In this document: piece by piece, positions 9,796 to 29,871 of the stretch
How the letters are laid out: each line of letters starts with the position of its first letter
Position numbering within the stretch: the stretch's first letter is position 1
IMG/VR virus record: IMGVR_UViG_3300031787_007614
Span: 248,001-312,000 of that record
Length of the DNA: 64,000 nucleotides
Direction: 5' to 3' (one strand)
Position numbers and translations under genes: made by a program
The notes under the pieces: generated by a model
What the model was told of the DNA's origin: nothing
The model's input: the letters and a program-made list of their open reading frames with translations, nothing else
The model's database searches: none

Positions 9796-10581
9796 TTAAG
9801 AAGTAACGTTGTCAACAATGGCCAAGTCAAGCAGATTTTGTTGTCCGCTTTGTACTGTGCCTGAGTTTGCTGCACCAGTGGTACCTGATTTGATAACTGT
9901 ACCTTCGTCTGTAAAGAAGTTGGTTGCATAACGCTTGTCAGCCACAACGCTGGCAGGGTCATAGTTTGCGCCGCCAGTCCAATCCAACAAGAACTTGTTG
10001 GTCAATTTGGAGATAGTAGTAGCAGTAGAATCAGTAACTGTAAATGTGATAGCCATCAATCCAGCTGCTGGAGTAGTGTCATCGGCCAGTACACAAACAC
10101 CCACTGAGAATGCTGCGCCGTTGCCAGATCCACCAACAGAAGTTGCTGTGAAAATTGTGCCTAATCCAAAGTTACTAGGAGCACCGGCTGCGGTCCAGTT
10201 AGTTGTTGTTCCAACAACACTAATTTGATATGCTTGCCCAACTACAAAACTGCCGTCGTTAACGCCATTGGCATCACCAACTAGGTATTTGTGTGAACCT
10301 TTTTGACGGATAATATATCCATTAGCAACGCCAATACCGCTGCCGTCAGGGGCTGCAATGTTCACAATTACGTCAATTCTAGGATTGGTTGCCGAAGGCG
10401 TATCAGTGGGGGCTGCACCACCCACCACGCCAAGATATTCAGTAGCACTGAGTGTGTCGCCTGTGTTGGTCACAGGGGCAGTTAATGATCCAAAATTTGG
10501 AAAGCCAATGTCAACGCTAACGGCTGCGCCGCCGTTGCCTGAACCAGTGCTTGTTTTTTGTATTTTAAGAGGACGTCCCAT
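9796..10581 (-). CDS. Putative virion structural protein (MGRPL N-terminus)
   Basis: 261-aa Gly/Thr-rich ORF with a strong SD (AAGGAGA), an upstream TAAATA and its own terminator. Confidence 0.6.
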   Translation of the reverse strand: MGRPLKIQKTSTGSGNGGAAVSVDIGFPNFGSLTAPVTNTGDTLSATEYLGVVGGAAPTDTPSATNPRIDVIVNIAAPDGSGIGVANGYIIRQKGSHKYLVGDANGVNDGSFVVGQAYQISVVGTTTNWTAAGAPSNFGLGTIFTATSVGGSGNGAAFSVGVCVLADDTTPAAGLMAITFTVTDSTATTISKLTNKFLLDWTGGANYDPASVVADKRYATNFFTDEGTVIKSGTTGAANSGTVQSGQQNLLDLAIVDNVTS

Positions 10582-10608
10582 TTTTGTTTCTCCTTACAGA
10601 AGTCCGAT

Positions 10609-10663
10609 GCGAGTTCTAGTCGCTACGCGGCGGGTTAAACCGCATAAAACACCGTATTGTGTT
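10609..10663 (-). promoter_or_regulatory. Structured 5' leader (three adjacent hairpins) of the MGRPL gene
   Basis: Stems AACAC/GTGTT, TATGCGG/CCGCGTA and GCGA-CTAGAAC-TCGC lie between TAAATA (10670-10675) and the SD. Confidence 0.45.
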
Positions 10664-10690
10664 GACAAGTATTTATGGAAATGTTAGAAT
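10662..10690 (+). promoter_or_regulatory. sigma70-type promoter for the TPR-glycosyltransferase
   Basis: TTGACA-17 nt-TAGAAT with an extended TG. A second, late-type TAAATA lies at 10707-10712, 5 nt before the ATG. Confidence 0.65.
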
Positions 10691-21671: not shown

Positions 21672-22517
21672 ATGAACCAAAATCACAATCCACTTAGACA
21701 ATTTTTTAGACAACCAGCAATTTACTTGCGGTTGCCCAGCCAGGGCAAATACTGGCCCGAAGGCAGCTTAGACGTGCCTCAAAACGGTGAGCTGCCTGTT
21801 TATCCCATGACAGCCATTGACGAAATCACCTATCGCACGCCAGATGCGCTGTTTAGCGGGCAAGCTGTGGTCAATGTAATACACAGTTGTGTGCCGTCAA
21901 TTAAGAATGCCTGGCATGCTCCTGTGGCAGATTTGAATTCTATCCTAGTTGCTATTCGTATTGCCAGCTACGGGCATGAGCTTGAAATTGAAACTACATG
22001 TCCTGCTTGCAAACACATTGAGAGTTTTGCGTTAGACTTGCGCAATGCACTGGATCAGTTGACCATGCCGGACTTTTCTGCCACAGTAACTTATGGTGAT
22101 TTGGAAATTTATTTTCATCCCATGAGTTACGAAAAGCAAAATGAAATCAATCTTGAGCAGTTTGAAAATCAACGCATGATGCGCAACATCAGCATGGATA
22201 CTGAGCTCACCGAAGACGAAAAGTTACAAAAACTAGCAGAAGTGATGAAAATACTAACTCAGCTGACCATGCGAGCTCTCAAGTACTCAATTTCAGCAAT
22301 TCGTACACCAAATGCTGTTGTGTCAGAGACTGAGCACATTGATGAATTTTTGCAAAACTGCGATCGTCAAATTTTTGTTGCTGTTAGAGATCACGCAGTT
22401 GACTTGCGCAATCGTACAGAACTGAAACCTGTGCATCTCACTTGCAGTGAATGCAATCACGAACATGATCAAGCACTAAATCTGGATCTTACAAATTTTT
22501 TCGAAGCCGCCTCCTGA
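21672..22517 (+). CDS. T4 gp26-like baseplate hub / tail assembly chaperone
   Basis: Motifs LPSQGKYW, ELPVYPMTAIDE, ILVAIRIASYG, two CxxC pairs and C-terminal LTNFF; adjacent to the tape-measure gene. Confidence 0.75.
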   Translation: MNQNHNPLRQFFRQPAIYLRLPSQGKYWPEGSLDVPQNGELPVYPMTAIDEITYRTPDALFSGQAVVNVIHSCVPSIKNAWHAPVADLNSILVAIRIASYGHELEIETTCPACKHIESFALDLRNALDQLTMPDFSATVTYGDLEIYFHPMSYEKQNEINLEQFENQRMMRNISMDTELTEDEKLQKLAEVMKILTQLTMRALKYSISAIRTPNAVVSETEHIDEFLQNCDRQIFVAVRDHAVDLRNRTELKPVHLTCSECNHEHDQALNLDLTNFFEAAS

Positions 22518-22732
22518 TCCTCCCAGTAGAGGAAATTGGCGAGTACATTGACAGCCTTGATCAGGAGGCCAACGCAATTAGATCAAACAGTTTAAGATTG
22601 GCTTGGTTAATGCGCGGCGGACTCACCTACGATCAGGTGTTGGCACTAAGTTTCACTGAAAGAAAAATGATCAGCAAGATAGCCGAAGAAAACATGGAAA
22701 CCACCAACAAAACTAAACTGCCGTATTTCTAA
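22499..22732 (+). CDS. -1 frame extension (~77 aa, gp51-like), probably reached by frameshift; not in ORF track
   Basis: The -1 frame is open from 22469 to TAA at 22730-22732 and encodes RSRLLILPVEEIGEYIDSLDQE…WLMRGGLTYDQVLALSFTERKMI…KLPYF. The slippery site A AAT TTT TTC is at 22493-22502. Confidence 0.7.
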   Translation, partial: FRSRLLILPVEEIGEYIDSLDQEANAIRSNSLRLAWLMRGGLTYDQVLALSFTERKMISKIAEENMETTNKTKLPYF

Positions 22733-23232
22733 TGGACTTAGATACAGTTAAACAAGATATTGAAAACTGGATTGTGAACTTTGTAGAAGTTCCACATCCT
22801 GCTCTTGGAGGCTGGGCTCCTTGTCCATACGCACGCTCAGCACGCATGAAAAAAAGCTACGATGTACATGTTGGCGTAGATCCTTACTTTGATCTTAAAA
22901 ATCGAGCACGATGGGGCATGGGCGATAAGGAAGTTATTATCTATGCTTACGATCCTGTGGAATGGCCATATGAATTGTTCAGTGACAGTTTGAAAAATGC
23001 CAACAAGGAACATTTGTTACGCAACGATCTACTTGCACTAGAGGATCATCCCGCAGACGTTGAGATGGTGAACGGTGTGTGTATGAATCAAGGCAAGTAT
23101 GCTCTAGCTCTAGTGCAAAGTCTCAGCGACTTAAACAACAAAGCCAAACTTATGGCTGAGAAGGGATTCTATCACAACTGGCCAGAAGAGTATCTTGCGG
23201 GACTGTTTGAACATCGTAAGGATCCAAGATGA
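22732..23232 (+). CDS. DUF1415-like hypothetical protein
   Basis: W..NFVE…PCPYAR N-terminal motif, DHP, and NQGKYALALVQ. Confidence 0.45.
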   Translation: MDLDTVKQDIENWIVNFVEVPHPALGGWAPCPYARSARMKKSYDVHVGVDPYFDLKNRARWGMGDKEVIIYAYDPVEWPYELFSDSLKNANKEHLLRNDLLALEDHPADVEMVNGVCMNQGKYALALVQSLSDLNNKAKLMAEKGFYHNWPEEYLAGLFEHRKDPR

Positions 23233-23663
23233 GCTATCAGTTTGCCAGAATCGATCTCAGCCAGACCAACTACACACCAAATGTAAAGTGGGAGTATTTG
23301 CGTGAGCCCAACATCAAACAGCTAAACTCTATCTACAGAGACTATTGCAAATACAAACATTTTGCAAGTGTGATGCCTATATTTGACTGTCGTTACACAG
23401 ACCCAATGACAGATGTAATAGGATATTACGATCAAAATCGATTGGTTGCATTCAGTTTGATCCGACGCTATGATGATCATAACGCACTGTGCGATCAATT
23501 TGCATGGAACTACAACAATCCTAAACTACGGTTGGGAATTGAAACAATGAAAACAGAGTGTGCTATCTACAAGGAACGAGGATTCCAATACTTGTATCTT
23601 GAGCAAGCACACCTATACAAATCCAACATGGACGGATTTGAAATACTAGGACCACTGGAGTAA
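23229..23663 (+). CDS. Arginyl/leucyl-tRNA-protein transferase C-terminal-like (ATE_C/Bpt, GNAT fold) protein
   Basis: GYYDQNRLVAFS…FAWNY..PKLRLG…E….KERGFQYLYL resembles the ATE_C pattern; no ATE N-terminal domain is visible. Confidence 0.55.
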   Translation: MSYQFARIDLSQTNYTPNVKWEYLREPNIKQLNSIYRDYCKYKHFASVMPIFDCRYTDPMTDVIGYYDQNRLVAFSLIRRYDDHNALCDQFAWNYNNPKLRLGIETMKTECAIYKERGFQYLYLEQAHLYKSNMDGFEILGPLE

Positions 23664-23665
23664 CT

Positions 23666-24001
23666 ATGGATTTATATACAATTTGGGCAGACAAAGAAGG
23701 CGACATCTCAGACTTAGACTGGGTCAACGGAATGAAAAGTTTCTTTGATCATTTGATATCAGAAGACAAGATGGTAGACTATCGTATCACAAGATGCAAG
23801 ATGGGATTCCGTTCAATTGCGGACATGCCTGAATGGATGATTATCATGGAGTTCCGAGACATGGGTCAAATGGACTCGGCTTTCAAACGAGTAGCACCGC
23901 TTGAGGGTGAACTTGAAGTCAAACACAAGTCATTCAATCAATTTGTGTCAGGCAATATTCAACATGCTTTATTTAGAGACTGGCCAGACACATTTGTATG
24001 A
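23666..24001 (+). CDS. DUF6614-like small alpha/beta protein
   Basis: Pattern MDLYTIW…YRITRCKMG…PEWMIIMEF…QMDSAF…ALFRDWPD. Confidence 0.45.
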   Translation: MDLYTIWADKEGDISDLDWVNGMKSFFDHLISEDKMVDYRITRCKMGFRSIADMPEWMIIMEFRDMGQMDSAFKRVAPLEGELEVKHKSFNQFVSGNIQHALFRDWPDTFV

Positions 24002-24522
24002 ACATCCTCGATCATGTACCTGTAGTACCTGATTGGCCCAAACCAGGTATTAACTTTTTTGACGTAACTGGCATTCTTGCCAATCCAGAAGCATTTGATT
24101 ACTGCTGTGGATGGTTAAAGCATCAAGCACATTGGTATAATGCTTCCAGTCTTGTGGCTGTGGAAAGCCGTGGCTTTGTGTTTGCGGCACCTGTAGCAAG
24201 ACAATTAGGACTTCCACTAATCCTAGTACGTAAACGTGGCAAATTGCCCGGCCCCACAATACAACACAGCTATCAAACTGAATACAGCACTGATACCATT
24301 GAAATGCACCCACACGCTCCAGTAGGCGCACATCCATTGATTGTGGATGACTTGCTAGCCACTGGAGGCACTATAATGGCCACAGCAAATCTAATTCGCA
24401 GTCATTGGATTGACACTAAAATTTCTGCTGCTGTGATTATAAACTTGCAGAACTTGCCTGGAGGGACAGCATTGACTCGGCACAATATTATGTGGGAAGG
24501 AATGGTCAATGTTGATGAATGA
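23998..24522 (+). CDS. apt: Adenine phosphoribosyltransferase
   Basis: Motifs PDWPKPGINFFDV, ESRGF, VRKRGKLPG, Y.TEY and the PRPP-binding loop LIVDDLLATGGT. Confidence 0.93.
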   Translation: MNILDHVPVVPDWPKPGINFFDVTGILANPEAFDYCCGWLKHQAHWYNASSLVAVESRGFVFAAPVARQLGLPLILVRKRGKLPGPTIQHSYQTEYSTDTIEMHPHAPVGAHPLIVDDLLATGGTIMATANLIRSHWIDTKISAAVIINLQNLPGGTALTRHNIMWEGMVNVDE

Positions 24523-25051
24523 TATTATTTTAATAGCTATTCGAGCAGAAGCACCAGATCTCAGCCACATGATGAACTTGTTTTACACTGGTGTGGGCAA
24601 GGTTAACGCTGCCATCACTGCCAGTGAAGTTATCACAAAGTATCGTCCCCGGCGTATCATTAACTTTGGCACAGCTGGTGGTATAACAGTCGCACCAGGA
24701 TTCTATCAATGCACTCAGTTTGTGCAAAGAGACATGACTTGTGAAGCATTAGGGTGTACCCCAGGACAAACACCTTTTGAAACTAGCACACACATTGGCA
24801 ACTCTACTGGCTTAACTTGCAGTACTGGTGACAACTTTGTGATGAATCCCATACTACAAATACCAGCAGATGTTGTAGACATGGAAGCCTATGCCATTGC
24901 CAAAGCATGCGAGAAATATGGAGTTGAGTTTGTGTGTTGGAAATACATCAGCGATCAAGCCAACCAACACGCACACAATGATTGGCAACAACAAGTTGCT
25001 CAAGGACAATCACATTATGTCAACAAACTCAAAGAGTTAAACTTATTATAA
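24509..25051 (+). CDS. mtnN: 5'-methylthioadenosine/S-adenosylhomocysteine nucleosidase (PNP_UDP_1 family)
   Basis: Motifs GVGKVNAA, INFGTAG, STGDNFV, VDMEAYAIA and KYISD; the true start may be 24515. Confidence 0.85.
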   Translation: MLMNDIILIAIRAEAPDLSHMMNLFYTGVGKVNAAITASEVITKYRPRRIINFGTAGGITVAPGFYQCTQFVQRDMTCEALGCTPGQTPFETSTHIGNSTGLTCSTGDNFVMNPILQIPADVVDMEAYAIAKACEKYGVEFVCWKYISDQANQHAHNDWQQQVAQGQSHYVNKLKELNLL

Positions 25052-25509
25052 GACTTGCTACGCAAGTCTATTAACTTCGCTTGCGCTCGTTAATTGATTG
25101 ATTTTCAAGAGCGAAGCGATTAAGTATTCATGTAGATAGATCTAGTCAGACGGAACCGTTTTGCGCGGTTCCGCTGTTGTCTTCATGTGAGTATCACTAG
25201 CCAAGACATTGGAAGTAGGTAATTTATTATACACCGTATGCTAAAGGACTCTGTGCTTTTCCTTCCTACCACGATACACATATTTCTACGTGCTCTAAAC
25301 CTCGTTCCTAGTGTTTAGATTTTTATAGCCGGTGTTCTCGTATGCTAACATTCATACTATATCAATGCGTCGGCCCTATTGTTCTAGCCTCAGACTCACT
25401 TCCAATTTTTCAGGATAGTCAGATTTACTGACGGGAGTGCCTCAATATGTCACGTGTCCGGTTATTCCCCGGTTTTTCCACAGCGGTATTACAAACTGGC
25501 CCGCCAACC
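25051..25509. ncRNA. Candidate large structured non-coding RNA (or structured DNA element); minus strand favoured
   Basis: ~460 nt with no ORF >=60 aa in an otherwise gap-free region. It contains at least 7 local stems and a 9-bp long-range complement (25208-25216 / 25398-25406). Confidence 0.5.
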
Positions 25510-25776
25510 TTAAGTGTTAGGTAAAATATAACCTTTTGGAATCCAATTAACAAATTTTCCACCGCAAGTGTTGCAAACTATTTTGCCTGCATGCGGTCCG
25601 GTAGGTTTGTTGACTATTTCCCATTCATGATTTTCGTGTATGCCTAATTGTTGCCTGAGTTTTTTTCGTTGTTCGTGCCATGCTTTATCAAATCCTGTCT
25701 TTGGATTAGTCCAATACGGATCATTCAAAAAGCCAGTGTCGCTTTTGTTAGTTTTACTGTAGTCAAGTTTAGTCAT
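25510..25776 (-). CDS. Small putative Zn-binding protein (H..H, PH, CxxC)
   Basis: HENH…PHAGKIVCNTCGGKFVNW; its start overlaps the GIY-YIG stop. Confidence 0.6.
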   Translation of the reverse strand: MTKLDYSKTNKSDTGFLNDPYWTNPKTGFDKAWHEQRKKLRQQLGIHENHEWEIVNKPTGPHAGKIVCNTCGGKFVNWIPKGYILPNT

Positions 25777-26201
25777 AATTTTCCTACGATGTGTGAGCCA
25801 TGCACACGAACTTGAATATGGCCGTTATAATAATCTGTTGATTCCAATACTTTTCTTGTGAACTGTTCTCTTGCTTCAATGTACGAACATTCTGATTTTG
25901 ATTTACAATAGTAAAGTATTTCTCTGGTAAAGTTTTCGGTGCCTAAAGTGATTACGTCTGCGGTTAATTCTGGGCTTGACCCGTAGTACTCTCTCCAATC
26001 TGAATCAATCTTTGATCGTATCTTCTTCCGCTTCTTTGTGCCGTTCTTTTGTTTGACTATTTTGTATGTTGTTTTGCTAAATTTTGCTAATTTTTTGCCT
26101 ATGTACTTGCGTCCAGATAGATTATTTGTGATTAGATAAACAAAACCTACACATTCTTCGGGCAGAGTCTCAACTGGGGTGTCTTGATGTAGCCATGTCA
26201 T
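25773..26201 (-). CDS. Stand-alone GIY-YIG nuclease-domain protein
   Basis: GFVYLITNNLSGRKYIGKK, YYGSS, FTREIL, E..EQF and YYN; CATAACTA lies upstream. Confidence 0.85.
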   Translation of the reverse strand: MTWLHQDTPVETLPEECVGFVYLITNNLSGRKYIGKKLAKFSKTTYKIVKQKNGTKKRKKIRSKIDSDWREYYGSSPELTADVITLGTENFTREILYYCKSKSECSYIEAREQFTRKVLESTDYYNGHIQVRVHGSHIVGKL

Positions 26202-26234
26202 GTGCGTTTAGTGGGTTTGCCTTTCGTGTTATAG

Positions 26235-26849
26235 TTATGATTTATGATCAAAGTTTACGTAAAAAGTTGCCTCTTCTATCACTGTGTTTGGACCAACAGA
26301 GATAGCGTATGTTATAAAATTGCTAATATCTTTTAAATTAATGCCGTTTCCTGTCCAGGTGGGCCGTCCACGACTTAGTTCTGTGTCCAAGCGATCAGGT
26401 GTGATTAGCGTGGTTCTGAACTGCACCAGATTTTGTTTGAATGACTGGGTGCCCTGCCTGCTGGCATGTGCCAGTGCCGCCTTGGCCACGCGGTACGTTT
26501 CAAATCTAGGCTCAGCAGCAACAATATGATGCTCGCCCACTGATCCAATATTAAAGATGTGCCCACTTTTGCCAGCGTTTTTCCACTTGTCGTATACTGC
26601 CATGTACAAGTTTGTTTGTGCAAAGTTGGCCCAGGCTTCTTGTGGTGGCCCATCAAATGCATTGTTTACAAACACATCATAATTCAAACTTTGTTGAGCA
26701 ATCAATTTGACTGCTTGGTCATCAGTGATATCCAAGTTTGTGGATCTGCTGACACTGTCAGCACCAAACACATCCACTAGGTGTTGCCCCAGTCCTCGGT
26801 TACCGCCTGTAACTAACATTTTCATCTTTTGCTTCCTCCTTGATCCCAA
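26235..26849 (-). CDS. Short-chain dehydrogenase/reductase (start probably 26825)
   Basis: Motifs TGGNRGLG, FVNNA, NIGS and catalytic YRVAK. Confidence 0.9.
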   Translation of the reverse strand: MGSRRKQKMKMLVTGGNRGLGQHLVDVFGADSVSRSTNLDITDDQAVKLIAQQSLNYDVFVNNAFDGPPQEAWANFAQTNLYMAVYDKWKNAGKSGHIFNIGSVGEHHIVAAEPRFETYRVAKAALAHASRQGTQSFKQNLVQFRTTLITPDRLDTELSRGRPTWTGNGINLKDISNFITYAISVGPNTVIEEATFYVNFDHKS

Positions 26850-27910
26850 ACTTTTGTAAATTTTTCACCGCATGTCATAGCACATTCAAACAATCGATCA
26901 CGAGTAAACGATTCAACTAAATCACTCCACATGGGATTTTCAAAAACACCTTCGAGGCTATTGTTATGAATGTTGAGATTATCTAATCCGTAACACAACA
27001 AAAAGTCTCGTACTTGATTGCGACCACCGGGCTGACTTAATGCATTTGCTCCTGGCATTGATCCATCATAAAATCTTGCATCATACAAATTGTGATTGAA
27101 AAAGTTGCATGGTAATACAACACCTTCGGCGTTGATAGCTACTTTGCGTCCTTGCAAGGCATCACATTTGATAGTAGTAGTAGCAAAGTAGTTCTGTTGC
27201 TTTTTTAACTCAGGTAAAAATGTCATACTGCGATTCTTGTACTGTGCATCACTAGGTGGTTCAAGTACATAGTCACTTTTGGCCACTGGCCACACAGGCA
27301 TCTCTTCCAGGGTGGTGTGATTCAAAAATCTACCAGTGTTTCGAATTAGTATGTTAAAAAATTTCATACTGCTGGCCAGTTGTTTGGCCTGCTCAACTTG
27401 GTGCTCGTTGTGTTTGAATACAATATAGTTCCATTGTGCTCGTCCTCCAGCATTTATAAACGCAGCGGCGTTTTCAATAACTTTGTTGTATTTTACATTT
27501 TTTCTATACAAATGTAAAGTATCTTCTAGTCCGTCAATACCAAAGTCAATTTGTCCGTAGCCGTTCATGATACTAGAAACTTCTGCCCAGTAATCAGGAT
27601 CGTGTACTCCGCCATTGGTATGGAAGTATAACCAAAGTGTAGGAGCTTTCTTTCTAAAGTCACGTAGTATGTCTAAAAAGTCTGGATGCATGATGGGATC
27701 GCCATAACTGCCGCAAAAGAATACTTGACGTAATCTACTGCACAATTCTTCAGAGAATGCACGGTCAATTACTTCACGTGATAAGTGTGTTAACGGCATG
27801 TAAGGATTGATACCATGTCCGTTGAGGTTGCGAGGACACTGGGGACAGGCAGCATTACAATAGCTGGTGATCTCTATCTGATACTCGTCAATAGTTTTAT
27901 AATCAAACAT
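26822..27910 (-). CDS. Radical SAM enzyme with C-terminal SPASM/twitch-like Cys domain
   Basis: CNAACPQC, GDP, HTNG, IDGL, G.VLPC and CAMTC. Confidence 0.9.
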   Translation of the reverse strand: MFDYKTIDEYQIEITSYCNAACPQCPRNLNGHGINPYMPLTHLSREVIDRAFSEELCSRLRQVFFCGSYGDPIMHPDFLDILRDFRKKAPTLWLYFHTNGGVHDPDYWAEVSSIMNGYGQIDFGIDGLEDTLHLYRKNVKYNKVIENAAAFINAGGRAQWNYIVFKHNEHQVEQAKQLASSMKFFNILIRNTGRFLNHTTLEEMPVWPVAKSDYVLEPPSDAQYKNRSMTFLPELKKQQNYFATTTIKCDALQGRKVAINAEGVVLPCNFFNHNLYDARFYDGSMPGANALSQPGGRNQVRDFLLCYGLDNLNIHNNSLEGVFENPMWSDLVESFTRDRLFECAMTCGEKFTKVWDQGGSKR

Positions 27911-28397
27911 TTATTTTAAAAAAGTCCAAAGTGTCTTTGAGTATGTCATTGCCACTGCGATCCAGTGTTTGTTCTGGACTCACGCCTGCAGGATTGATTG
28001 TTTTAATAATCCAATTCAATACTGGCGCATCAAAATTCAAAATCCATGTACCGTTGTTGCCCAACCAATGACATGGCGTAATGCACTCCAAACTGTAATC
28101 TGGGTACCAACGTCCTTGATGCGTTAGCATGCAATGTTCATGATGATCTAAATCTACTCCGTCGACCACAATAGATTTTAATTCAATATGACGATCATGT
28201 TCGGCATTCTGATGTTTCCAGGCATGCTTACCAAAGTGTTCTATAGTCAATGTGTGAGTACCTGGCACTAACTCTGTGTTCACAACAATTTGTTTTTTCA
28301 CTGTGTCTTGATACAAGCATTGTTGATCAATAAAAATTTTGACTGTAGGGATACCAAAATAATCATCGTAATCAAACTCAAACAAAAATTCAGACAT
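27903..28397 (-). CDS. Hypothetical beta-rich protein in the radical-SAM cassette
   Basis: 164-aa ORF overlapping both neighbours. Confidence 0.65.
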   Translation of the reverse strand: MSEFLFEFDYDDYFGIPTVKIFIDQQCLYQDTVKKQIVVNTELVPGTHTLTIEHFGKHAWKHQNAEHDRHIELKSIVVDGVDLDHHEHCMLTHQGRWYPDYSLECITPCHWLGNNGTWILNFDAPVLNWIIKTINPAGVSPEQTLDRSGNDILKDTLDFFKINV

Positions 28398-29871
28398 TGG
28401 CCAACTCCGTAAGATATCGATCTTTGATAATACTCAAGTGATCATCACCTTTCCAGATAGTATATCCCAGATCTTCGGCCAACTTGTGCAGTTCAATGCG
28501 TCGACGCACACGTTCTGCATAGTCAAGTTCAGGTGTTGTGGTACAAATCCAATTGATGCCTTTGGCGGTGTCGCCCTTGATTGGAACAATGTTAAATTTT
28601 GCAGGATTATCAAACATAGGTGTTCCTTGTTCTACTGTCAATCCTGTGCCTAAGTTGCATCCAATAATAGTTCCTAGTGCAACATATTTCTGCCAGCGTC
28701 GTAGCAAGTTCTTGGTCTCTTCAAAGTCGGTTTGTGTTTCATTTGGAAACCCTACCAGCAACAACAAGAAGAATTTCATTTTGTACTTGCTGAACTGCTG
28801 TATGTTAAACTCAAGATCTGCGTTTGAAAATCCCTTGTTCATGATGTTTCGCAAACGTTCGCTACCAGTCTCAACTCCAGTTTCAAACATTTCTCCTCCG
28901 GCACGACTTAGCAGTTCAAAATTGTGCTCTTTGAATTGAGTTTCACTTCGCACAATCCAATAACCACTGAATGTAAAGAATCTGTCAGGTAAATTGTTTT
29001 GTTGATAAAACTCAATGATGCAGTTCAAAAATAGTTTAAAATCTTTGACGCTGCCGTTCATCAACGCATCGTTAAAATAAAAGTTACGCACACCATACTG
29101 TTGGTAATAGCCAATCATTTCATTAGCTAGTACCTTTCCGTTTTTGTATCTATATCCTCCAGCATGTGTGGGGATGTCACAAAACGCACAGCTTCTAACA
29201 CATCCACGACTGCTTTCAATTGGCAATACCCCGCCGGGGTAGGCAGTTACATATTGTTCTATTGCAAAGTCACTATAATCTGCGATGTTGTTAGTATCAA
29301 GATCAACATCATTGACCAACACATCACTGTCTAATCCAGGTACATTGCTACCAGTTAAAAAATTGTAAAAACTGTTTTCAGCTTCTCCAGCAATCCAATG
29401 ATCAATTAGTCCTTGATTTTTTAACTTGTGTGCAAAATGCATCTTGGTACTAAAGCTACCGTTTTGTTCATTGATAAGACCTTGTCCGCCTACAATGATT
29501 GTGCCTGTAAAATTTTTACGCAACAATGGAAAAAAGTCAAGACAAAATCGTTGACTTTCCCAACTGAATACACTTACTGCAATGATCTTGCAATCAAAAG
29601 CCATTAATTTTTCAACCCATGCTTGCAACCAACTAGAGTAAGTTGTTTTCTCCTCAGGCAACAGATTTTTGTTCCATTGTATCCAATATTGATCAATGGC
29701 ATTGGCAGTTGACGGATTAGAAGATTTAAAATTTTGATAAAAGTCCAAATTAATATCAAAAACTTTTGAAGTAACGCCCGCACGATTGCAAATTGATTTG
29801 AGTATGCCACAGGCACTTTGAGGCCGAGTGGCACTCAAACGTGGTATACTTAAAATCAAAACATCAGTCAT
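28390..29871 (-). CDS. B12-binding-domain-like radical SAM protein
   Basis: N-terminal IAVSVFSW…IIVGG, then SSRGCVRSCAFCD, GVETGSER and VGFPNET..DF. Confidence 0.85.
   Translation of the reverse strand: MTDVLILSIPRLSATRPQSACGILKSICNRAGVTSKVFDINLDFYQNFKSSNPSTANAIDQYWIQWNKNLLPEEKTTYSSWLQAWVEKLMAFDCKIIAVSVFSWESQRFCLDFFPLLRKNFTGTIIVGGQGLINEQNGSFSTKMHFAHKLKNQGLIDHWIAGEAENSFYNFLTGSNVPGLDSDVLVNDVDLDTNNIADYSDFAIEQYVTAYPGGVLPIESSRGCVRSCAFCDIPTHAGGYRYKNGKVLANEMIGYYQQYGVRNFYFNDALMNGSVKDFKLFLNCIIEFYQQNNLPDRFFTFSGYWIVRSETQFKEHNFELLSRAGGEMFETGVETGSERLRNIMNKGFSNADLEFNIQQFSKYKMKFFLLLLVGFPNETQTDFEETKNLLRRWQKYVALGTIIGCNLGTGLTVEQGTPMFDNPAKFNIVPIKGDTAKGINWICTTTPELDYAERVRRRIELHKLAEDLGYTIWKGDDHLSIIKDRYLTELANV

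Follow-up and report, generated by a model that had tools for sequence, protein, structure and literature searches.

The window analysed here is a 64,000-nt stretch (positions 248,001 to 312,000) of the IMG/VR virus record IMGVR_UViG_3300031787_007614. Positions 25052-25509 of this window form a 458-nt ORF-poor gap between convergent genes, which a first-pass annotation had flagged as a hairpin-dense non-coding element downstream of a stand-alone GIY-YIG nuclease gene. This observation was confirmed, although the RNA is encoded on the minus strand, running from about 25520, where it overlaps the last codons of an 88-aa ORF, to 25051. The features of the locus are as follows:

24509-25051, plus strand: PNP_UDP_1-like gene, convergent with the genes below.
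25051-25522, minus strand: whole ncRNA gene ("class 1 SegE-downstream RNA"), comprising a core and a conserved 3' tail, about 470 nt.
25051-25069, minus strand: terminal hairpin AGACUUGC-GUAG-CAAGUCU, the probable 3' end, shared back to back with the end of the PNP-like gene.
25077-25119, minus strand: first part of the 3' tail, a long hairpin in the window.
25131-25520, minus strand: RNA core of 17 helices, including long-range helices and pseudoknots.
25215-25335, minus strand: pseudoknotted centre, in which H9/H14, Ha, Hb and Hc interleave.
25510-25776, minus strand: 88-aa ORF of unknown function, an optional insert between nuclease gene and RNA, whose stop codon lies inside the conserved 5' end of the RNA.
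25773-26201, minus strand: 142-aa GIY-YIG nuclease gene, domain only.
26230-26238, minus strand: ATAACTATA, a cassette-specific motif and candidate promoter of the nuclease gene.

To investigate whether the gap is under selection, it was compared with related loci. The gap is 80-100% identical in nucleotides in relatives whose 88-aa protein is only about 60% identical, and conservation starts at 25520, inside the end of the ORF. There is no 3-periodicity and every frame contains stops, which indicates that the conserved segment is not coding. Fold energy in the single sequence is unremarkable on the plus strand (z -1.6) and modest on the minus strand (z -3.2), so the case rests on comparative data. 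In an 18-sequence alignment, 23 of 88 pairs are compensatory. Across 51 distinct relatives, a 17-helix model with pseudoknots is 96.8% paired and 37 of its 84 pairs show double changes, against 21±1.7 in shuffles, none of 500 of which reached this value, and 5-9 in slid controls. G·U cells outnumber A·C cells 324 to 25, which fixes the strand.

The helices of the core are H1 (25520-15 with 25350-45), H2 (25505-01 with 25486-82), the closing helix H3 (25481-77 with 25136-32), H4 (25472-69 with 25461-58), H5 (25448-42 with 25365-59), H6 (25438-35 with 25397-94), H7 (25432-28 with 25422-18), H7b (25415-13 with 25403-01), H8 (25389-86 with 25375-72), H14 (25335-30 with 25236-31), H9 (25329-26 with 25243-40), H10 (25319-13 with 25300-294), H11 (25293-90 with 25279-76), Ha (25272-70 with 25255-53), Hb (25269-65 with 25219-15), Hc (25263-60 with 25248-45) and H15 (25174-67 with 25157-50). 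In the pseudoknotted centre, Ha has six pair types (GUG/CAC, GAC/GUC, GAU/AUC and others), Hb changes from GUAGG/CCUAC to GCAGG/CCUGC, and H14 changes from CACCG/CGGUG to CACUG/CAGUG and CACUA/UAGUG.

Most of the stems proposed in the first-pass annotation were supported across the family. AGACTTGC/GCAAGTCT (25051-69), TCTAAAC/GTTTAGA (H10), GTCAG/CTGAC (H7), CCGG/CCGG (H4) and GCGG/CCGC (H2) all covary, and the long-range ACACCG/CGGTGT pairing corresponds to H14, while CGGAACCG/CGGTTCCG (H15) is strictly conserved, with only wobble-compatible one-sided changes and no double changes. In contrast, CTAGT/ACTAG and AGAC/GTCT, the outer stems of its proposed nested domain, are not supported across the family, and neither is the long-range ATTGGAAGT/ACTTCCAAT, which conflicts with two covarying helices. 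TCGCTT.CGCTC/GAGCG.AAGCGA exists in the window, but in relatives it is replaced by a UUCG-type hairpin plus a hairpin whose loop reads GAGCGNNAGCGAA; the GAGCG-NN-AGCGAA motif of this region is kept in myovirus-like and podovirus-like contexts and also follows a second RNA class (class 2, below). The duplication of CGTATGCTAA is real, where one copy pairs with the 5' end of the RNA (H1) and the other flanks H9/H14. The terminal hairpin covaries in columns 510-528 of the 18-sequence alignment, but it is followed by UUAUAAU rather than a U-tract and was not called by a terminator scan.

The RNA belongs to a family that is absent from Rfam 15. The only hit in the gap at E≤10 was a 16-bit miRNA chance match, nothing fell inside the RNA in six diverse relatives, and the whole window contains only freshwater-2, which is located elsewhere. 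ARAGORN detected no tRNA or tmRNA, and blastn returned no match in GenBank phages. Motif scans of IMG/VR, where nearly all hits were true relatives, yielded 147 distinct full-length core sequences (125 at <95% identity) from freshwater and marine phage metagenomes, whereas none of 120 motif hits in bacterial genome contigs was real.

The nuclease matches Pfam SegE_GIY-YIG (PF19835) at E 1.4e-32 over the whole profile, as well as PHROG 447, which is misnamed "NAD synthetase", and features the hallmark invariant residues FVY, YIG, R93 and YYN126. It is 40% identical to PSSM2_218 of P-SSM2 (E 5e-20), which belongs to the same GIY-YIG family, but aligns to residues 4-102 only of T4 SegE, and so lacks the C-terminal DNA-binding part of that protein, as the first-pass annotation had stated, while carrying a lysine/arginine-rich insertion. 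The 88-aa ORF shows no significant similarity to the SegE C-terminus; it has one CxxC and no Pfam, PHROG or Atlas lead, and its earlier description as a Zn-finger protein is putative. Its homologues are 39-100% identical, and a deletion variant appears as a joint from 25520 to 25789. The TAACTA previously proposed as a late-type promoter is part of ATAACTATA, which is unique in the 64-kb window and is conserved, often preceded by AGGCA, upstream of the nuclease gene in close relatives. Contigs from RNA libraries cover the nuclease gene, where metatranscriptome depth is highest, and the RNA, but depth falls to about 0 upstream of 26257, and words from the RNA occur in at least 14 metatranscriptome runs. 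This is consistent with transcription, although these contigs carry no direction and DNA carry-over in the RNA libraries cannot be excluded.

To determine how closely the RNA is linked to the nuclease, we examined 127 distinct RNAs with enough upstream sequence. Of these, 119 have the GIY-YIG gene within 450 nt upstream on the same strand; the 88-aa ORF is present in 42 of the 127 copies and absent in 77, where the nuclease ORF abuts the RNA. Six copies have no nuclease upstream, and in two further loci the nuclease lies downstream of the RNA. The RNA occurs without the nuclease in other phage types, with a promoter-like motif of its own. Other upstream neighbours are a RusA-like resolvase and, about 760 nt upstream in one locus, an HNH gene. 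AGGC lies within 45 nt upstream of the RNA 5' end in 83 of 123 copies, against a background of 14%, and an AGGCAnTATyAT motif also recurs elsewhere in one nuclease-free contig (L259). Conversely, the RNA is found at 0 of 80 P-SSM2-like loci, where the median gap from the nuclease gene to the next ORF is about 0, and the cultured phages Melnitz, S-SRM01 and P-SSM2 lack a downstream RNA.

The slot downstream of the nuclease gene also appears to be swappable. Two related loci, L008 and L010, have flanks that are 93% identical in DNA and the same nuclease, but a different RNA, and nucleases 93-97% identical to that of the window carry an unrelated RNA class instead. A second class (class 2), of roughly 330 nt, is itself widespread, and all 107 of its loci with room have the nuclease upstream. 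Sister loci L027 and L029 instead carry Polynucleobacter-1 (RF01718) in the same slot, at 118 and 108 bits, 23 nt after the nuclease stop codon in L027, while L030 and L033 have protein-coding inserts. Between the window and a further related locus, L020, the nuclease gene is 88% identical in nucleotides, against 70-72% for the flanks. The neighbourhood matches that of T4 segE: in T4, segE and uvsW converge on the uvsY-25-26 block, and here a gp26-like gene lies at 21672-22517. Every related locus recovered at this position has the nuclease gene, and it appears fixed in the lineage sampled rather than sporadic, although across phages its contexts vary and one copy is broken in P-HM2.

Polynucleobacter-1 is an orphan structured RNA from freshwater and estuary metagenomes that was reported "downstream of genes ... 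with possible homology to PSSM2_218" (Weinberg et al. 2010, PMC2864571), a location shared with the RNA described here, although those authors did not identify the neighbouring gene as a GIY-YIG nuclease. Both RNAs contain a CUAUCC-loop-GGA hairpin string, a resemblance seen by eye only, but the RNA of the window does not match the RF01718 model even at E≤10, is about three times longer and has a different helix order. HEARO/ωRNA, which functions with IscB in OMEGA systems, is likewise a large ornate RNA found by gene-neighbourhood linkage to a small nuclease gene of a mobile element, but HEARO lies upstream of its ORF, ends in a variable guide and is obligatory for an HNH/RuvC nuclease at a transposon end, whereas here the RNA is downstream of a GIY-YIG gene and each partner occurs without the other. 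GOLLD and ROOL are also large, highly structured RNA genes of phages or prophages, found mainly in metagenomes, including lake water, and their biochemical function is unknown; the present RNA has no sequence or structure match to them in Rfam, is smaller (about 0.47 kb against 0.6-0.8 kb) and neighbours a nuclease gene rather than tRNA genes. Like SegB, which sits among tRNA genes in T-even phages, the nuclease sits beside a highly conserved RNA gene.

The comparative data show that the gap is the gene for a non-coding RNA of about 470 nt with multiple pseudoknots, read from the minus strand and belonging to a widespread family that is not in Rfam 15. What follows is inferred, and is favoured with only moderate confidence. 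In this T4-like phage, the RNA would be transcribed as the 3' part of the transcript that starts at ATAACTATA, possibly also from a promoter of its own associated with the AGGC-containing motif, and the covarying terminal hairpin is taken as its 3' end. We interpret the RNA as an autonomous accessory RNA gene rather than a subunit of the nuclease, and as one of at least three interchangeable RNA cassettes (class 1, class 2 and a class containing Polynucleobacter-1) in the cargo or target slot of a free-standing SegE-type homing endonuclease gene. By analogy with T4 SegE, which cuts in its downstream neighbour uvsW, and with SegB, the nuclease would cut genomes that lack the cassette at or near this slot during mixed infection, and repair would then copy the nuclease gene and the adjacent RNA gene together, which would keep the two side by side and spread them. 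Homing into an empty site is thus inferred rather than seen, as no nuclease-free copy of this exact locus was found in the T4-like lineage, and conserved gene order within one phage lineage could alone explain much of the adjacency. The size, invariant unpaired stretches and pseudoknots of the RNA point to a trans-acting RNA with a specific tertiary fold, such as a protein-binding or catalytic RNA, rather than a simple regulatory hairpin array.

The interpretation in the first-pass annotation was partly supported: a conserved, ornate non-coding RNA does lie directly downstream of the nuclease on its strand, without an Rfam match and strongly linked to it, but the inference that the two form an RNP, with the RNA as guide or scaffold by analogy to HEARO and IscB, was not. 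Such a partnership, in which the RNA could also be a DNA-binding surrogate, an inhibitor or an immunity factor, is unlikely on present evidence but not excluded. Three RNA classes all abutting the stop codon of one protein family is also what such a partnership would predict. Further points in its favour are the nuclease gene directly upstream on the same strand in 94% of RNA copies and in 107 of 107 class 2 loci, the reported location of Polynucleobacter-1 downstream of this gene family, the correlation of nuclease and RNA identities between loci (rho 0.63), the coverage of both genes in RNA libraries, the lysine/arginine-rich insertion of the nuclease and the absence of a recognisable DNA-binding domain, which leaves site recognition unexplained and room for an RNA partner. 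However, besides the nuclease genes without RNA, the RNAs without nuclease and the exchange of RNA classes between near-identical nucleases, RNAs about 86% identical to that of the window sit beside nucleases only 56-59% identical to its nuclease, RNAs 81-84% identical between other loci pair with nucleases 50-56% identical, and ORFs of 0.3-2.4 kb can sit between the two genes. The 51-sequence alignment contains no constant-length hypervariable unpaired segment, and the best match of the RNA to the rest of the window is 12 nt, equal to shuffles. In the boldest form of this idea, which we also consider improbable, the domain-only protein would use the RNA as its missing DNA-recognition or regulatory module, making the pair an RNA-guided, RNA-scaffolded or RNA-gated homing endonuclease, with the three RNA classes as alternative specificity or immunity cassettes and the RNA-free cyanophage homologues as a separate, protein-only branch.

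Less likely still is a cis-acting 3' element of the nuclease mRNA, such as a protective structure, a processing or termination module at the convergent junction, or a translational control. The upstream ORF always ends within the first 13 nt of the conserved RNA, with its stop codon inside H1, the RNA lies where two transcription units converge, ends in covarying hairpins and is probably co-transcribed, but about 390 nt with invariant unpaired stretches and pseudoknots is far more than stability or termination needs, homologous nuclease genes manage without it, and the same RNA stands alone behind unrelated genes with a gap of 90-250 nt and a promoter-like motif. A replication-origin primer RNA or packaging signal, which the first-pass annotation had raised as an origin or packaging site, was neither supported nor excluded and seems very unlikely. 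T4 oriF lies in the syntenic uvsY-25-26 neighbourhood, and a structured RNA of about 0.5 kb with its own promoter is the format of ColE1 RNA II; however, no iterons or tandem repeats were noticed on reading the gap and its alignments, rather than by a dedicated repeat scan, there is no AT-rich unwinding block (GC in the gap is 0.39-0.44, like the flanks), three unrelated RNA classes and protein-coding inserts occupy the same slot, and the G·U bias along the whole length argues for selection on RNA rather than on double-stranded DNA. A group I or group II intron, or another known ribozyme or RNA missed by Rfam, is largely refuted, even though GIY-YIG genes often accompany group I introns, the Rfam group I model is insensitive, and the RNA has a GAUAUAGU string resembling the group I "S" element. 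GAUAU is base-paired in the strongly covarying helix H5, there are no exons, as the sequence before the RNA differs between loci (an 88-aa ORF, the nuclease ORF or non-coding DNA) and that after it is a hairpin tail followed by genes on the other strand, and no spliced joint appears in RNA contigs. No Rfam intron (including RF00028), tmRNA, RNase P, GOLLD, ROOL or HEARO hit was obtained at E≤10, and, in a comparison made by hand only, the helix order inferred from covariation did not fit P3-[P4-P6]-P7-P3'-P8-P7'.

Large RNAs with complex pseudoknotted folds are rare, and those known have almost all turned out to be ribozymes, RNP cores or guide RNAs; the present family, as far as tested, is confined to phage contigs. 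The rule that a SegE-type GIY-YIG gene is followed by one of several large RNAs also explains the 16-year-old orphan motif Polynucleobacter-1. If these RNAs are partners of the nuclease, this would be the first RNA-dependent GIY-YIG enzyme that we know of, whereas if they are cargo or targets of a homing endonuclease, they show selfish nucleases spreading non-coding RNA genes between phages.

To establish what occupies the gap downstream of the nuclease gene, we examined its gene content and flanking genes. Window 25052-25509 is a 458-nt stretch with only short ORFs (30-45 aa), and it lies between convergent genes. The relevant features are:

up to 25051 (+), a PNP_UDP_1-like phosphorylase gene, which ends at this position
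25510-25776 (-), an ORF of 88 aa with no family assignment
25773-26201 (-), the gene for a 142-aa GIY-YIG protein, which precedes the 88-aa ORF with an ATGA overlap
26230-26238 (-), the motif ATAACTATA upstream of the nuclease gene
22732-25051 (+), flanking genes of metabolic type: DUF6614, a phosphoribosyltransferase and a PNP/UDP-type phosphorylase
26235-29871 (-), flanking genes of metabolic type: a short-chain dehydrogenase and two large ORFs (362 and 493 aa) that look like radical-SAM enzymes, judged from their cysteine motifs alone

ARAGORN detected no tRNA or tmRNA in the gap, and no Rfam family matched it at gathering score or at E≤10; Rfam searches of six relatives were equally negative. 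The only Rfam family seen elsewhere in the window is an unrelated freshwater-2 RNA (RF02980; 68.6 bits) at 10579-10664 (-), immediately upstream of a gene for a 261-aa protein (9796-10581, -). A blastn search of GenBank phages, with both the window and a marine relative as queries, matched only the nuclease gene. The fold energy of the single sequence is not striking (z of -1.6 on the + strand and -3.2 on the - strand), and this sequence alone would not have settled the matter. Identical copies of the region lie on IMG/VR contigs of 220, 364 and 286 kb, which are long for a T4-like phage with Kyanoviridae-type genes and are either genuinely large genomes or concatenated assemblies.

To determine whether the gap encodes a structured RNA, protein-seeded searches of IMG/VR were used to collect 60 loci (loci from these and the later searches carry L numbers below). 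The gap is 80-100% identical in nucleotides, even where the neighbouring 88-aa protein is only about 60% identical, and conservation begins sharply at CUAACAC (25520), inside the last codons of the upstream ORF. An 18-sequence alignment gave 88 predicted pairs, of which 23 carry compensatory double changes. Two conserved motifs of 15-16 nt were then used to scan IMG/VR, each returning at least 120 hits, and nhmmer showed that nearly every hit is a true relative. This yielded at least 147 distinct full-length core sequences, 125 of them below 95% identity. By contrast, none of the 120 motif hits examined in bacterial genomes was real by nhmmer, although these hits are not exhaustive and absence from bacteria is not proven.

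A hand-curated model of 17 helices and 84 pairs, including pseudoknots, was scored on 51 diverse members. In total, 96.8% of cells are paired, compared with 89.0% in shuffles, and 37 pairs carry double changes, compared with 21.0±1.7 in shuffles (0 of 500 reached this value), while sliding the 3' partners by 1-3 columns leaves 5-9 such pairs and 30-39% pairing. G·U cells number 324 against 25 A·C cells, so the helices work on the minus strand and lose seven percentage points of pairing on the plus strand. The model features a long-range 5' helix (H1, CUAACA/UGUUAG), a closing helix (H3, GUGGA/UCUAC), several covarying hairpins and a centre in which helices H9/H14, Ha, Hb and Hc interleave as pseudoknots (25215-25335). 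In almost every context this core is followed by a conserved 3' tail consisting of a UUCG-type hairpin, a hairpin with loop GAGCGNNAGCGAA and a terminal hairpin with loop GUAG.

The first-pass annotation had described a hairpin-dense non-coding element at this position, and that observation holds. Most of its stems are kept, and the three that it placed at 25051-25119 belong to the 3' tail, but CTAGT/ACTAG and AGAC/GTCT are not conserved and ATTGGAAGT/ACTTCCAAT is contradicted by two covarying helices that use the same bases. Two elements proposed by RNAalifold were also set aside. A local hairpin UAAC/GGUU at the 5' end is broken in L024 and L052, and the long-range H1, which includes a C-G to U-A double change in L168, was kept instead. 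A helix GUGAGU/ACUCAC (25400-25395 with 25192-25187) competes with H6 (25438-35 with 25397-94), in which GAGU pairs with ACUC. Both fit every sequence, but only H6 shows a true compensatory change, so the former could still be an alternative conformation.

To investigate how closely the RNA is tied to the nuclease, we recorded the position of the GIY-YIG gene for 127 distinct full-length RNAs with at least 750 nt of upstream sequence. The link between the two is real, and was found from RNA motifs and not from the protein.

Position of the GIY-YIG gene relative to the RNA (number of copies among 127)
Abuts the RNA (≤60 nt), same strand: 77
60-450 nt upstream, with a small ORF between, as in the window: 42
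450-1100 nt upstream: 1
Downstream of the RNA: 1
None within 1 kb upstream: 6

However, this association has limits. The nuclease-free copies lie in different phage types, where some follow tail-fibre and lysis-like genes, some follow a RusA-like resolvase and one has an HNH gene about 760 nt upstream. These copies are preceded by a promoter-like AGGCAnTATyAT motif, which also recurs elsewhere in one of the contigs, L259. AGGC lies within 45 nt of the 5' end of the RNA in 83 of 123 members, compared with 14% of background windows. Across many loci (for example L214:13519, L224:5227, L259:5911 and 8220), a recurrent AGGCA-containing motif (AGGCAnTATyAT, AGGCATAACTATA, AGGCAnnGGTAAGTA) precedes both the nuclease gene and the RNA, and is possibly a promoter class of these phages or a 5' extension of the RNA. 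Conversely, the nuclease family is very common without any RNA. It is encoded by 462 GenBank phages, there is no large downstream gap in Melnitz, S-SRM01 and P-SSM2, and none of 80 P-SSM2-like IMG/VR loci has the RNA, with a median distance to the next ORF of about 0.

The position downstream of the nuclease gene is also swappable. Contigs L008 and L010 are about 93% identical in DNA to the window on both sides and encode virtually the same nuclease, but window 25105-25787 is replaced there by an unrelated non-coding sequence of about 330 nt, which we call class 2 (L008:4596-4930, - strand; also in L010, L020, L022, L025 and L488-L607), the RNA of the window being class 1. This second widespread candidate RNA has no Rfam match, and shares strings of 8-10 nt and the 3' hairpin tail with class 1. 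A scan of IMG/VR with an 18-nt class-2 motif provided at least 107 loci with enough room, and all 107 have the nuclease upstream on the same strand, 88 of them within 900 nt. Two further contigs, L027 and L029, carry the Rfam motif Polynucleobacter-1 (RF01718; 118 bits at L027:4843-4979 and 108 bits at L029:4827-4963, both on the - strand). In L027 this motif starts 23 nt after the nuclease stop codon and is followed by about 280 nt that share a 3' domain with class 2, so the Rfam motif may be only the 5' domain of a longer RNA. L030 and L033 have protein-coding inserts in the slot.

Literature searches for an RNA linked to a GIY-YIG gene found only the 2010 supplement that described Polynucleobacter-1 (Weinberg et al. 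2010, PMC2864571), which states that most examples lie downstream of genes homologous to P-SSM2 locus PSSM2_218. That gene encodes the 145-aa 'NAD synthetase', which is 40% identical to the window nuclease. The rule that this gene family is followed by a structured RNA was therefore glimpsed before, without the gene being recognised as a GIY-YIG nuclease, and now covers at least three RNA classes.

The 142-aa protein matches the whole Pfam profile SegE_GIY-YIG (E 1.4e-32) as well as PHROG 447, a family misnamed 'NAD synthetase'. Many GenBank records use this name, which looks like a propagated misannotation. The protein aligns to residues 4-102 of T4 SegE, has a lysine/arginine-rich insertion and stops where the roughly 100-aa C-terminal region of SegE begins, while the hallmark residues FVY, YIG, Arg and YYN are invariant. 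A PDB sequence search with the nuclease found nothing. In Prochlorococcus phage P-HM2 (161341-161925) the homologue is split into two annotated ORFs and is probably a decayed copy. The 88-aa ORF shows no significant similarity to the C-terminus of SegE, and Pfam, PHROG and Atlas searches with it gave no assignment. This ORF is optional. In a natural variant (L011, L012, L013 and L035; junction 25520/25789) it is missing, with 22 other nucleotides in its place, and the nuclease ORF runs straight into the first bases of the RNA and ends at the same TAA. The variant is seen both in viral contigs and as a joint in an RNA-library contig.

The genome neighbourhood mirrors that of T4, in which segE and uvsW converge on the uvsY-25-26 block, as here a gp26-like gene lies 3 kb away on the converging strand. 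The motif ATAACTATA is unique in the window and is conserved upstream of the nuclease gene in close relatives. Depth in four metatranscriptomes falls to about zero just upstream of this motif, while the nuclease gene and the RNA are covered. The contigs carry no strand information and depth sums over relatives, so this shows presence in RNA libraries and not a mapped transcript. Words from the RNA occur in at least 14 metatranscriptome runs.

The first-pass annotation had inferred that the RNA could form an RNP with the nuclease as guide or scaffold. Its interpretation is only partly supported, as the structured RNA and its link to the nuclease gene were borne out but the RNP inference was not supported. 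Against a partnership, each partner occurs without the other, and RNA classes swap behind an almost unchanged protein. RNAs about 86% identical to that of the window sit beside nucleases only 56-59% identical to its nuclease, and other locus pairs show the same discordance. A guide RNA in particular was rejected, as the alignment shows no constant-length hypervariable unpaired segment and the best complementarity to the other 63.5 kb of the window is 12 nt, no better than shuffles. On the other hand, the adjacency is very tight, the nuclease has no recognisable DNA-binding domain, three RNA classes all start at the stop codon of one protein family, and nuclease and RNA identities are correlated (rho 0.63). 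We regard a partnership as unlikely but possible, and a truly RNA-dependent nuclease, which is one form of it, as less likely still.

Of the other readings, a cis-acting 3' element of the mRNA is doubtful, an origin or primer RNA is very unlikely, and an intron or known ribozyme is a remote possibility. A group I intron, including a permuted one suggested by GAUAUAGU and GACUAGA strings, was rejected because GAUAU is paired in the covarying helix H5, there are no exons and no spliced joint appears in RNA contigs. A hidden protein gene was also rejected, as variation shows no 3-periodicity and every frame has 4-13 stops, while an antisense ORF cluster seen in some relatives is absent from the window. 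More speculatively, GGA motifs in loops could suggest a CsrA-type sponge, and self-cleavage at the 5' edge of the RNA can be envisaged.

Collectively, the analysis itself establishes a minus-strand RNA gene of about 470 nt with pseudoknots, which belongs to a new and widespread family that is phage-restricted as far as tested, and which is adjacent to a SegE-type GIY-YIG gene. The remainder of our interpretation is inference: that the RNA is an autonomous accessory gene occupying the cargo or target slot of a free-standing homing-endonuclease cassette, and that repair after a double-strand break would copy nuclease and RNA together. T4 SegE, which acts on its downstream neighbour uvsW, and SegB, which lies among tRNA genes, are the precedents for this view. 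The nuclease gene is 88% identical between the window and L020, while the flanks are 70-72% identical, which fits lateral spread, although stronger purifying selection could also explain it. The architecture of the RNA suggests a trans-acting RNA with a defined tertiary fold.

The family is new relative to Rfam 15, to GenBank phage records and to the literature that could be searched, whereas a large orphan phage RNA tied to a small nuclease gene has precedents in Polynucleobacter-1 and HEARO. An RNA-dependent GIY-YIG enzyme would be the exciting reading but is currently the less likely one. The RNA represents a solid new class of large RNA, and its association with this nuclease family explains an old orphan motif.
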